A stretch of 63,667 nt of DNA, filler included, from Reticulomyxa filosa (lineage: Eukaryota; Protista; Foraminifera): NCBI GenBank assembly GCA_000512085.1. It is 25 parts of 25 records of this genome, joined end to end, with 100 filler letters (N's around TTAATTAATTAA, not from the genome) between each part and the next. Parts side by side here need not be neighbours in the genome. Positions count along the whole stretch, not along the records: positions 59,081 to 61,680 come from ASPP01013622.1; 24 more parts are not named here. One strand, written 5' to 3'. The notes under the pieces are model-generated. The model ran no database searches. It saw only the letters and a program-made list of their open reading frames with translations, and was not told where the DNA came from. Positions 3,270 to 61,680 of this stretch are shown here, piece by piece. The translations under genes were made by a program, and so were the position numbers. Every line of letters begins with the position of its first letter. The first letter of the stretch is position 1.

Positions 3270-4160
3270 TTTTACTTTCACGTCCGCACGCTTTTTTCGC
3301 TGTTCAAGTTTCTCAATTTCTAGTCTTTGGCATTTAATACATTATCGAAATGTTCTTGCAGTTTCACAAACTCATTATCGTGAATTTCCTTTCGACATTC
3401 ACTTGCACTTGAACTGTCAATTCTTTTTATGGTTTTCCAGTGATGACTGTGCACAGCGCATAATTGCTCAGATTGATAAAGGGCATTGTTCACCAAGCTA
3501 GCATAATTTCCATCTTGAAGCGAGTTAATCTTGTTTCAGCTGCTGTAAACTTTGCAAAAGGCTTGAGTTCAAAGCCGATGTGAAGATGTGGGTTTGTTTT
3601 CGTAATCTTTTCCTTCTTTTTACTCCTCGGCTATTCTTTGTCGCAATTATTTCTTCTCTTTGCTAAATTTTTCGATTTGTCCATTGCTGTTGGCGATCAA
3701 TCTAGAGCGATTGCCCAACTAATTTCAAAGTTTTTTCTTGTGCTCTTGCACCACTATATTCATCATGCAATTTTCTTTGGTCCTTCATCCTTTCATGCGT
3801 CGTTGGCTCATTTCTTGCGCTGTGATGTTATGCCGTGTCAATAAATCAGTTAATATTGACGAAAACGTACACCTTTCTCTTTCGCCCAATACCATCGTGT
3901 GTACATGTTGAATAGCCTCGCCTGCCCCCGCTCCAAAGGAATCATTGATGTTTGTGATTATTCCTCTTTCAACCAGTGAAGTAATATCTAGTCTTTCTGA
4001 TAATCTTCGATCCAATATCTCACTGGTTCGCGAACGGTGCAGTTGTCTTTCGTTTATTTGGCTTTGCATATCTGCAGGACCTCCACAAAATATTCTTGTC
4101 CATTAAATCGGTAATCGAAGGTCTTAGACCAAATGCTTTGCATAAGGTTGGATTTTTTGC
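3270..4160 (-). pseudogene. RPEL-repeat (G-actin-binding) and coiled-coil protein, frameshifted
   Basis: Two RPEL-like motifs, FGLRPSITDLMDKNIL and LDRRLSERLDITSLVERGII, in different frames. The downstream coiled-coil-like text (EFVKLQEHFDNVLNAKD*) carries stops and frameshifts. Confidence 0.6.
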
Positions 4161-58870: not shown

Positions 58871-59165
58871 ATACATAAATGAATTTTTTTGGTGCAAGCT
58901 GTTGCACCATTTTTTTCAAAAAAAAAAAAAAAGTGTTTTTGGTCTTCACAATACAAAGTGGAGAGGTACAATTACAAACCNNNNNNNNNNNNNNNNNNNN
59001 NNNNNNNNNNNNNNNNNNNNNNNNTTAATTAATTAANNNNNNNNNNNNNNNNNNNNNNNNNNNNNNNNNNNNNNNNNNNNAAAAAAAAAAAAAAAACTAC
59101 GTATACATATATGTATTATATATATATTGTATATTGTATGTAATGTTTTTTTTTTTTTTCAAAAC

Positions 59166-59459
59166 ATGTTAAATCTAAGTTGAAGTCATGTTCCTCGTCA
59201 ATAAATCTTCTTTTCTTACGACTGACAGCTTTTCGAATTTTCTCGGCAAACCAATTGTTGGCCTTTTTTTCCAAAATGGCATCCAAGCCGGCCTTGTCTT
59301 GTTTGCTCGTTTTTTGTCCTTTGTACAAAAAATTGTTTGATTTCCTGTTTTTGCTTTTCGTGGTACTTTTTCGTTTCCTGTCATTTTCCTTCTTCTCTTG
59401 TGACAGGTCTTGTTTTTCCTCTTGTTGCTGCGCTTTGTCGTCATTTTCATTCGTATTAA

Positions 59460-59538
<79 letters not shown>

Positions 59539-60912
59539 GTCATTGTCATTGTCATTGTCGTCATTATCATCGTCGTCGTTTTCATCATCTTCGGACAGTT
59601 CCTCGGGCAGTCCTCCAATAGCCATGATAATCTGTTGGTCTTCTTTGGGAATATTCGACATCCTTTTCTTCATTTCTTTTTCTTCTTTGGTTAGTTTTTT
59701 CGGACGTCGAAGTTCTTCCGCCTCCGCGATTTCGTCCACGCCCTCCGTTTCGTCTTTGACATCTGAGTCCATCCGCTTCTTCTTTTTCTTCTTGGCCGAA
59801 GGAACGGGGTGGTTGGGGTCGTACACTCCAAACAGATTGTCCACGCTCTCTGTTTGCGTCTGAGTGAGCATTTGGAATCGAGCATTGTCCGATGCTGTTT
59901 CATTTGATGTGATTGGTGTTGCATTACACAGTGGTGTGTATGTATGTGTCATCAACAAAACAAAATAAATAAACACTTGGTGATGCAGGCTCTTGGACTG
60001 GGCTTTGTACATTGTCAGATGGGAGTTGATTCAGGACAAACTCTTCTTCCCACTCTTTGAAGTCGTGCATTGGATGATCCATGTCTTTGTCCAGTTTCTT
60101 TTCTCTGGGCGAATCCGTGAGTCTGGTCGCCACTTGTTGCAGCACAAATGGGGGCTGGTGTTCTCGACGACGTATTTGATTCCACTGAATGCCACCCTCG
60201 CGAAAGAACGCATGGTCCATTACCTCCATTGCCCCCTTTGCTCCGAGGCGTTTGCTGCAATCGCGTTCGAGCAGTTGAAGAATCAGATCTTGCATTAATG
60301 GATGCACTTGAGCCGATTCATTGAGCAGTGAGCCAAAAAGCAGTTGTTTGATATCATCTATATATGTACGTATGTATGTATGTATGTATATGTACGTATG
60401 TATGTATATACTTATATACATACATATACATACATATACATATATATATATATGTATATATGTATATATGATTAATTGTCGTTCCGACTGTAGAGTGATG
60501 AAAAATGATATGTACGTAGATAAGTACACACCGCAGCAAATGGCTTGGCACACTTGCTCCCTGTCTCCGGTGAACGGGGGAATGCCCGTCAGGATGTGAT
60601 AAATCAGTATGCCAAGTCTCCACCAATCCGAGACGCGATCGTCTGTGCCAAACAGCAAAAACTCGGGCGGCGCATAGCACAAAGGGCCCGTTCGATAGAT
60701 GATCTTTTCGTTGCGTTGCGAATCAAAGGTGGGAAGCGCAAATGCAAAGTCCGTTAAAATTATATGGGATTTGTGAGATATGTATATTGTCTCTGGCGAC
60801 AGATTGGGAAATGTTAGATCATGTTTGTGTAAATATTCTGTCAAACAAGTGCATTTATTTTGTTTATTGGATCTCTTGGTTTTTTATTTTTTTTTTTTTT
60901 ATATCATATACA

Positions 60913-60944
<32 letters not shown>

Positions 60945-61179
60945 CATGTATACGTATATGTATAATATATGGCATACCAATGGCACACACTATTTCCGCA
61001 ATAAGTACTCGGAGAGATGTCGCAGACACACTTCGATAAAGATGCAAACAATTTGTTAACGATCCATTGGCTGGACAATTGTACGAAGCCCACGCGCTTT
61101 TTCCGGTATCGCCACGACGAAGTTGTGTGATCAGATAAGGATTGATCAGCTTCGACATTTTATTCATCGATTCGTACGC

Positions 61180-61221
<42 letters not shown>

Positions 61222-61680
61222 TGTATATATGTGTATATTATATATACATATATATATATATATATGTATAGTCCATCCAACATACAAAAGTTGGCAAGAC
61301 AAAAAAAGAATATCCAATAGCGACATACCAAATGAAAGTTGGGATCATGCTTCGCAGCAACCTGCAAAAGATAAGGCACGTCACTGAGTTCGGTGGTGAC
61401 AATGGCCACCTTGCCATAGGGTGGGACGTCCTCCTCTTCGGGTCGATAGTTGAGTGTCAGACGTCTTTTGGTGCGATGAGAGATTGGTTGACACCATCGT
61501 CGAGCGAGCACGACGCCACCATAGGTGAAAACTCCTCTTGCACTTGATATCCAGAGATATGTTCAGGCAGCACATTTTCCATAATGGATAATCTGGTGAT
61601 ATCAGCAAAATGATGAGCGGGTTCTTTTTCCTCTTGTTCTTCTTCTTCTTCTTCTTTTTCTTTTTCTTTTTCTTTTTCTT
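59166..61680 (-). CDS. AGC-family pseudokinase fused via a low-complexity linker to a PTEN-like phosphatase N-terminus (both ends truncated)
   Basis: Kinase subdomains YGKVAIV, IAEIVCAI/EYLH, LTDFAF, GPLCYAPPE, DWWRLGILIY..TGIPPF, KRLGAKGAMEVMDHAFF and W..I...PPF. The final visible exon ends EKIRKAVSRKKRRFIDEEHDFNLDLT. Confidence 0.8.
59462..59582 (-). repeat. Coding (GAC/AAT)n repeat encoding poly-Asp/Asn
   Basis: About 25 consecutive AAT codons in the kinase-PTEN linker. Confidence 0.9.

Follow-up and report, generated by a model that had tools for sequence, protein, structure and literature searches.

Positions 59,081-61,680 of the window, a stretch of 63,667 nucleotides (nt) joined from 25 parts of the genome assembly of Reticulomyxa filosa (GCA_000512085.1), derive from record ASPP01013622.1 and contain one multi-exon gene on the minus strand (2.6 kb), truncated on either side by low-complexity sequence. 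This piece is most probably an internal fragment of a single gene that would encode an AGC-type pseudokinase, a low-complexity linker of ~270 residues and a complete PTEN. An earlier note on the same DNA had proposed that a degenerate AGC kinase shares one chain with PTEN, and the proposal is supported by a relative in which the two halves lie in one continuous open reading frame (ORF), by intron positions shared with the window, and by two further relatives in which the PTEN half has no start of its own. We conclude that PH domain, AGC pseudokinase, PTEN and C2 domain form a real architecture, without a match elsewhere in the libraries and literature searched. Here we present the evidence for this arrangement, together with the alternatives and a description of the gene.

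The uninterrupted form of the gene is found on L004, an ENA metagenome contig of 5061 nt with a G+C content (GC) of 32%. A single ORF of 590 codons (P0100, L004:318-2090) extends there from the kinase C-lobe to the PTEN motif (..KKKRRFIDKNHDFNLDLT / ..KFRKAVSKKKRRFIDKNHDFNLDLT). It opens with the C-lobe and the AGC tail (DVKDFILRLLIRDRDQRLG .. HPFF .. APILRHLATRE .. HPMYDFNVNDW) and continues through a linker of ~390 codons, in which DDLFGNYVP and SDQIAAAAHLREPI are common to the window and to two other relatives, L002 and L005. The ORF has no internal stops, compared with 15-114 in the other five frames, and the chance of 390 open linker codons, calculated from the base composition of the linker, is ~1e-15. 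A 75-nt intron (T|GTATGT..TTTAG|AT) splits a Tyr codon exactly where exon 5 of the window ends. Two intron positions, with their phases, are common to the window and L004, namely the one after ..AICQ / ..AICC and the one within the Tyr codon; exons 4 and 5 of the window correspond to one exon in L004.

A complete PTEN is encoded at L004:2154-3929. Its match to human PTEN has an E-value of 3.5e-54 (7JVX, 1D5R), in an alignment that starts at MGFPAE and so excludes the N-terminus of human PTEN itself. Matches to TPTE2 (1e-33), Ci-VSP (1e-31) and auxilin (2.4e-14) are weaker, with VSP-type matches ranging from 1e-33 to 1e-29. HCKAGKGRTG and KGVTIPSQRRYV are identical to human PTEN, and DHNAP stands for DHNPP; taking L004 and L002 together, HCKAGKGRTG, the TI loop (TIPSQRRY) and the Asp loop DHN(A/C)P are identical or nearly identical to their human counterparts. 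A Pfam PTEN_C2 domain is on record for L004 and scores above the cut-off in L002 (28.9 and 35.2 bits). The earlier note had asked for a continuation with HCxxGxxR and a C2 domain, and both are present in the downstream exons of the relatives (HCKAGKGRTG, C2). The PTEN module is likely to be active as a phosphatase. The PTEN half of L004 ends (3900-3926) in ..TTFV-stop, which has the look of a class-I PDZ-binding motif and resembles the C-terminal TKV of human PTEN.

L002 (7149 nt, 29% GC) and L005 (4536 nt, 28% GC; TARA metagenome) carry, in this order, the kinase (plus strand), a calmodulin-like gene with four EF-hands (minus strand) and the linker with PTEN (plus strand). In L001, the closest relative of the window, the kinase tail is followed by the equivalent convergent calmodulin-like gene and then by the contig end. 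The calmodulin-like gene (L002:2733-3200, L005:3487-3954 and L001:1459-1950, minus strand; Pfam EF-hand E ~1e-38 to 1e-42) has no counterpart in the window or in L004. In both L002 and L005 the kinase ORF runs up to a phase-1 consensus donor, AATG|GTATGT, past which the unspliced residues differ (M-stop and MYIYYLFCN-stop, respectively). Downstream of the calmodulin-like gene, on the PTEN side, both loci have an AG|GA acceptor, also in phase 1, where G + GA gives Gly, followed by LNIL(N/T)ENQANDPFAQYV... From this AG to the first ATG there are 23 codons, 16 of them identical between the two loci, 6 with synonymous and 1 with a non-synonymous difference; the 77 nt before the AG are identical at 35 positions, and an in-frame stop lies just upstream of the AG. 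Coding conservation thus begins at the AG, 23 codons before the first ATG, which argues that the PTEN half lacks its own start and is entered via the splice acceptor. On the simplest reading, the joining intron of L002 and L005 would be 620-720 nt long and would host the opposite-strand gene, the window would have a short intron without the guest gene, and L004 would have lost the intron. The possibility that the PTEN half has a tiny first exon of its own, located between its acceptor and the calmodulin-like gene, was considered for both loci and rejected: in L002 no ATG precedes a GT in this interval, and in L005 the sole ATG..GT would leave a 28-nt intron of the wrong phase. The otherwise unalignable sequence before the acceptor contains a conserved palindrome, TGACGTCAA (L002:3305-3313, L005 ~4034-4042), located 20-45 nt upstream of the acceptor of the PTEN half and ~100 nt from the start of the calmodulin-like gene. 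It may mark a branch-site region or else act as a promoter element resembling a cAMP response element (CRE), possibly for an internal PTEN-only transcript.

In the window, the joining intron (intron 4, 59976-59895, minus strand) is 82 nt long (GTGTTT..AAACAG), is in phase 1 on both sides and has 33% GC, compared with 49% and 38% in the flanking exons. It contains the TAA (59926-59924) at which the unspliced kinase frame ends; the stop at 59924 had been reported in the earlier note. A phase-1 GT..AG intron joining the kinase in frame had been reported there as well and was recovered, with the borders corrected from 59974-59896 to 59976-59895. Twelve GT..AG pairs between 60060 and 59850 join both frames without a stop, and an in-frame join is therefore weak evidence by itself. 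The pair 59976/59895 was preferred because GC drops across the interval, the interval has a T-rich start, and the phase agrees with that in L001, L002 and L005, where the kinase tail likewise ends at a phase-1 donor (L004 has no intron there); in addition, SDNARFQ, encoded directly behind the acceptor, is similar to ANDPFAQ at the equivalent place in L002 and L005.

Exon 5 (59894-59166, minus strand; 243 codons) is open over 242 codons, the other two frames having 4 and 40 stops. It encodes the linker motif SVDNLFGxYxPNHP, a K-rich stretch, a poly-Asn tract, the basic N-terminal motif of PTEN (..RKAVSRKKRRFIDEEHDFNLDLT) and the first base of a Tyr codon. The exon ends in ..KIRKAVSRKKRRFIDEEHDFNLDLT / ..SRKKRRFIDEEHDFNLDLT / ..KAGLDAILEKKANNWFAEKIRKAVSRKKRRFIDEEHDFNLDLT, followed by T + GT, which is the expected Tyr codon split by a phase-1 donor, and the linker does lead into the N-terminal motif of PTEN (..KAGLDAILEKKANNWFAEKIRKAVSRKKRRFIDEEHDFNLDLT plus the T of the split codon), as had been claimed. 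The matching stretch in L002 and L004 runs on as ..YITKRIIAMGFPAEG, and over its last 43 residues exon 5 shares ~75% identity with L002 and with the end of P0100, both of which continue into PTEN. Intron 5 starts at 59165 (GTTTTG.., 13% GC) and is truncated by the contig end at 59081. An (AAT)n repeat at 59448-59592 gives rise to the poly-Asn tract of the linker.

Several observations weigh against the reading of one intact, fused gene. Of PTEN, the window includes only the ~25 first residues, and the contig ends (59081) short of the phosphatase and C2 exons; as the piece stops after the motif, the PTEN call from the window by itself is drawn from the N-terminal motif. The 12 alternative GT..AG pairs leave the splice borders unfixed. 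None of the public sequencing runs had more than 6% of the sampled words of the piece, and contigs from the four best runs gave only 30-nt matches to low-complexity repeats; splicing at intron 4 is therefore a prediction from the genomic sequence. A gene between the halves in L001, L002 and L005 at face value favours two separate genes, and separate transcription would be possible there. L002 has a coverage of 1.7x, and two compensating frameshifts (990-1050) bracket its catalytic-loop segment LSPETVYISHKSHI. In L004, a kinase segment (LSPETVYISHKAHIILTDFGFA..YRTGPLCYAPPEF) lies on the minus strand at positions 1-186, inverted with respect to the rest of the gene, and indicates some assembly trouble; it is probably an artefact at the contig end. 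The frame break near the 5' end of the window gene calls for an atypically GC-rich intron or an indel, and the window copy could be damaged. Finally, a gating or targeting role of the dead kinase is something that we infer.

Some of these observations would fit two adjacent genes, a pseudokinase that ends at the TAA (59926-59924) and a PTEN that starts at the ATG of ..FQMLTQTQ.. (~59872), the apparent intron being coincidental. Without splicing, the kinase ORF indeed ends at 59924, an ATG follows 8 codons past the proposed acceptor, in-frame GT..AG pairs are easily found in this region, the run searches gave no RNA support for the splice, and the halves are separated by another gene in three relatives. 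However, the gap between stop and ATG would be ~50 nt, too small to accommodate both a 3' end and a promoter in a genome whose introns measure 82-174 nt, and the interval is T-rich, lower in GC and intron-like. Furthermore, L004 has a single continuous ORF across the homologous region, the conservation between L002 and L005 (6 synonymous to 1 non-synonymous) starts at the AG and not at the ATG 23 codons later, and ancestral genes that were separate would have had to fuse in frame twice independently, once for the window and once for L004. We therefore regard two adjacent genes as improbable and retain the single gene.

The frame break concerns the N-lobe, where YQVQEEF..SLDD and EDVPPYGKV are read in different frames. 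Excising 59 nt (61494-61436, GT..AG, phase 1) yields ..SLDD-E-EDVPPYGKV, close to ..IDDEYIPPFGKV of L002; this putative intron has ~49% GC, unlike the other introns (18-33%), and a 1-nt indel, real or due to assembly error, is the alternative. The break (61495-61435) raises the question of whether the fused family is real but the window copy decaying or mis-assembled and making no functional protein. Such a view would also accommodate the reduction of DFG to DFA, a linker much shorter than those of the relatives, and a short contig ending in low-complexity repeats, and damaged family copies do exist, both among fragments from three samples with shared frameshifts (L007-L009 and P0085) and in L002 with its compensating frameshifts and in-frame stop. 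But apart from the break all five exons are open with proper GT..AG borders, exons 2 and 3 share 68% and 76% identity, respectively, with the relative P0001 and have the invariant motifs of the family intact, and the 59-nt phase-1 intron cures the break and restores the DDE..PPYGKV match to L002. DFA, moreover, also occurs in P0002, an independent relative. A decayed or mis-assembled window copy is thus improbable, and an intact internal fragment remains the preferred interpretation. Further irregularities of L002 are a frame change in the kinase tail (2204), an in-frame TGA in the linker (3912-3914) and a frame change between phosphatase and C2 (~4800); its frame defects could be sequencing errors or decay.

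The kinase half was classified from the window exons, each searched separately. Exon 3 alone matched the Pfam Pkinase model with an E-value of 3.1e-11, which improved to 5.7e-15 (55.8 bits; cut-off 31.7) when the frame was read through exons 3 and 4, where no stop interrupts it. Among solved structures, all 60 of the 60 best matches listed were AGC kinases, S6K1 ranking first (2.7e-22) and the N-terminal domains of MSK/RSK, SGK1, PKG and PKA following. With the full-length orthologue P0006, GRK5, PDK1, S6K1, MSK1, SGK1 and PKA scored alike (1e-21 to 1e-15). The earlier description as 'Akt/S6K-like' therefore holds at the level of the AGC group only. The AGC-type tail described there is present: HAFF..WNQIRRREHQPPFV of the window corresponds to HPFF.. 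of S6K1, and HAFFREGGIQWNQIRRREHQPPFV aligns with the S6K1 tail, although the Pfam Pkinase_C model gave no score on it.

Every feature of degeneracy listed in that description (EEDVPPYGKV, LTFPNLSPET without the HRD Asp, and DFA) was found on the minus strand. The degenerate Gly loop, EDVPPYGKVAIV, reads from 61433 downwards, and LTFPNLSPET and ILTDFAFALP in exon 3 align with IIYRDLKPEN and LTDFGL of S6K1. In an alignment with ten kinases from the large search, of which 8 had canonical catalytic motifs, five catalytic positions were replaced: the beta3 Lys by Gln, the alphaC Glu by Ser (window) or Val (P0006), the HRD Asp by Asn, and the Lys and Asn of the catalytic loop by Ser and Thr, respectively. 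The third and last Gly is the sole one remaining of the GxGxxG loop (PPYGKV). DFG is intact in P0001 and P0006 and reads DFA in the window and P0002. With five or six catalytic positions gone, the domain is a pseudokinase by the usual criteria, and it is very probably inactive as a catalyst. FPNLSPET is invariant across the window, P0001, P0002 and P0006; all family members that cover the catalytic loop have (N/T)FPNL(S/T)P, and all that cover the tail have ATRx(T/P)(D/E)S and HPM(H/Y)xF. Retention of these motifs across the family indicates that the dead active site is conserved and not decaying. The hydrophobic motif FxxF(S/T)(Y/F) is absent at the aligned place from every family member in the alignment with active AGC kinases; HPMHxFxxW is conserved at an earlier position in the tail. 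A retained non-catalytic role is suggested by the invariance of the FPNLSPET pocket and the conservation of the tail.

An active atypical kinase, which would make the protein a bifunctional kinase/phosphatase, was also considered. In its favour, the family retains the Asp of DFG and shows good conservation of both fold and substrate-binding C-lobe, and activity is known for some kinases without the canonical residues (WNK and CASK, for example). Here, however, the beta3 Lys, the alphaC Glu, the HRD Asp and both the Lys and the Asn of the catalytic loop are all lost, and one Gly of GxGxxG is left, so that catalytic activity is very improbable and the pseudokinase assignment is maintained.

The N-terminal part of the architecture is known from L005. 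Its N-terminal region (L005:136-483) opens with an exon at the first ATG (136), in which positions 136-405 match the PH domain model with 25.7 bits (cut-off 25.1; E 1.7e-5), and an 87-nt phase-0 intron (GTTAAT..ATATAG) connects this exon to an upstream extension of the P0006 ORF, which encodes ..ASEWIHMLRSSI.., a typical last PH helix. From exon, intron and helix the order of the family is PH domain, low-complexity region, AGC pseudokinase, linker, PTEN, C2 and tail. The low-complexity region between PH domain and kinase comprises ~280 residues in L005. The window is truncated at 61680, within the linker upstream of the kinase, and by analogy with L005 a PH domain probably lies upstream of its kinase as well.

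Compared with canonical PTEN, the window has the same N-terminal basic motif of the phosphatidylinositol bisphosphate (PIP2)-binding type and the same ..DLDLTY boundary, and L004 and L002 continue into phosphatase and PTEN C2 domain (human PTEN, 3.5e-54). In contrast to PTEN, the module here is internal and follows 600 to >1000 residues that include the pseudokinase (and in L005 the PH domain), so that the 'N-terminal' basic motif is not N-terminal in this family. GAK/auxilin likewise combines a kinase N-terminal to a PTEN-like phosphatase and C2 domain on one chain. GAK has an active NAK-family kinase and a catalytically dead PTEN-like domain, and ends in clathrin-binding and J domains. The roles are reversed here, with a dead kinase of AGC type and a PTEN active site that is intact in the relatives; the PTEN half of the relatives matches PTEN at 3.5e-54 but auxilin at 2.4e-14, and Pfam detected no J domain (DnaJ) in L004 or L002. 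The distinction from GAK/auxilin drawn in the earlier note is therefore upheld on the kinase, the phosphatase and the J domain alike.

With Akt/PKB, the family shares a PH domain at the very N-terminus (L005) followed by an AGC-type fold with an AGC tail; it differs in the loss of the catalytic residues, in having no canonical FxxF(S/T)Y motif that aligns, in the ~280 low-complexity residues between PH domain and kinase, and in the fusion to the antagonist of the pathway. The voltage-sensing phosphatases (Ci-VSP, TPTE/TPIP), which are the second-best matches among solved structures, resemble it in having an N-terminal sensor, a basic linker motif and a PTEN-type phosphatase with C2 domain, but their sensor is a transmembrane voltage sensor, as opposed to the soluble PH domain and pseudokinase found here. 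The kinetoplastid 'kinatases' are fusions of one or more pseudokinase domains without the HRD Asp to an apparently active Cys-based phosphatase and were proposed to be regulatory scaffolds (PMC2175518). They too join pseudokinase and phosphatase; unlike the present family, they have an atypical dual-specificity phosphatase instead of PTEN, two pseudokinase domains whose closest annotated match is CaMKK instead of AGC, and leucine-rich repeats (PMC2175518). Multi-domain PTEN proteins and pseudokinase-phosphatase fusions are thus kinds already known, whereas AGC pseudokinase plus PTEN is a new combination, so far found only in an AT-rich eukaryotic lineage.

In the Akt PH/kinase pair, the binding of phosphatidylinositol trisphosphate (PIP3) releases the interaction between PH and kinase and switches the enzyme on. 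Modelled on this switch and on the sensor-plus-PTEN logic of the voltage-sensing phosphatases, pseudokinase and PH domain may together serve as a regulatory or docking unit, by which the attached PIP3 3-phosphatase is gated or placed at membranes. The PTEN module, whose active site in the relatives matches that of human PTEN, would dephosphorylate PIP3, and a PIP3 sensor and a PIP3 eraser on one chain would provide negative feedback. A more specific version is a feedback device of the PI3K pathway, in which an Akt-derived PH-pseudokinase senses PIP3 or phosphatidylinositol 3,4-bisphosphate, PI(3,4)P2, keeps PTEN auto-inhibited until PIP3 rises and then releases it; the conserved tail would perhaps still dock regulators of the PDK1/TORC2 type. 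This version is tentative and rather doubtful.

PTEN and Akt are opposing arms of PI3K signalling, and how PTEN is recruited to membranes and switched is still an open question. An intact PTEN tied to a dead domain of the Akt/S6K type would, if true, be a ready-made experiment on the allosteric control of PTEN. It would also add a new class of multi-domain PTEN proteins beside GAK and the voltage-sensing phosphatases and another pseudokinase that serves as a regulatory module; under the feedback device, the sensor half of the main effector of the pathway would have been re-used as the on-switch of its antagonist. The joining intron, with a nested opposite-strand gene in some species, short in the window and absent from L004, is in addition a case of intron and gene-structure evolution.

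A word search with the kinase ORF of the window returned fragments only: P0001 (420 residues, 73% identical), P0002 and P0003. An exhaustive search with P0001 among 1.84 billion representatives yielded seven family proteins only (P0006, P0002, P0003, P0010, P0013, P0085 and P0100), all of them fragments from assemblies. The kinase-PTEN combination was found at four related loci. Word searches with P0100 and with the tail of window exon 5 gave no additional bridging ORF, a scan of JGI metagenomes with a two-sequence profile gave no match, and a second JGI scan retrieved nothing beyond a GC-rich kinase that is unrelated (L006) and fragments of the N-lobe (L007-L009). None of the 8 long kinase hits scanned with Pfam for PTEN contained it (they were RSK-like double kinases or PH-kinases), feature searches in the ESM Atlas found no cluster pairing Pkinase with PTEN families, and no AGC pseudokinase-PTEN protein was described in the literature searched. 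L007, L008 and L009, which come from three JGI samples, and P0085 have 38-40% GC and contain the N-terminal half only, with no C-lobe after it. Identical frameshifts near PFGKVAIV and near the catalytic loop (NLTP / ETIYISHKSHV) recur across samples, and these family members may represent a pseudogene or an unusual gene structure. More distant pseudokinases are P0009 and P0025 (L010), in which the catalytic loop reads FTNLGPEQ, DFG is changed to DFL and the beta3 Lys to Gln. In P0009, GKFWKIDKK (similar to DKFWKIDAT in P0006) comes after a PH domain, and P0025 is a stand-alone ORF of 339 residues; PH domain plus kinase is also the arrangement of another distant relative, P0026. P0009 and P0025 hint at an older PH-pseudokinase lineage, from which the pseudokinase of the present family may have arisen.

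The remaining exons and introns of the window gene, all on the minus strand, are as follows. Exon 0 (61680-61495) is open to the 5' edge and encodes a K/E-rich linker, the motif RLSIMENVLP and the start of the N-lobe (YQVQEEF..SLDD). Exon 1 (61435-61329), on the other side of the frame break, encodes the remnant of the Gly-rich loop (PPYGKVAIV) and the beta3 strand YLLQV, in which Gln replaces the Lys of VAIK. It is followed by intron 1 (61328-61180; 149 nt, GTATGT..AAAAAG, phase 0, 18% GC, with a TA-microsatellite). Exon 2 (61179-60978) covers the alphaC region with its replaced Glu, beta4-5, hinge and alphaE, and is separated by intron 2 (60977-60838; 140 nt, GTATGC..TGACAG, phase 1, 21% GC) from exon 3 (60837-60532), which contains FPNLSPET (for YRDLKPEN), DFA, the activation segment, APPE and alphaF. 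Intron 3 (60531-60358; 174 nt, GTGTGT..ATATAG, phase 1, 25% GC) is in frame and stop-free, and its position and phase recur in L004. Exon 4 (60357-59977) encodes the end of the C-lobe and the C-terminal AGC tail with the family motif ATRxTDSPRE..HPMHxFxxW. Introns 1-4 all end in AG and have 18-33% GC, compared with 38-53% in the exons. Introns 1-3 are full of TA/TACA microsatellites and the contig terminates on either side within homopolymer or low-complexity runs; these repeats and ends are probably the cause of the assembly break at this place and of the repeat-only matches to sequencing runs. Just ahead of the kinase domain, (R)RLSIM(E/D)xVLP is found in the window (61570-61600), L002 (~560-590) and L005 (~1470-1500), and YQVQEEF of the window is conserved as YKVEEEF in the latter two. 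In L002 and L005 the (R)RLSIM(E/D)xVLP motif has the basic-x-x-Ser appearance of a putative phosphorylation site of the AGC/PKA type.

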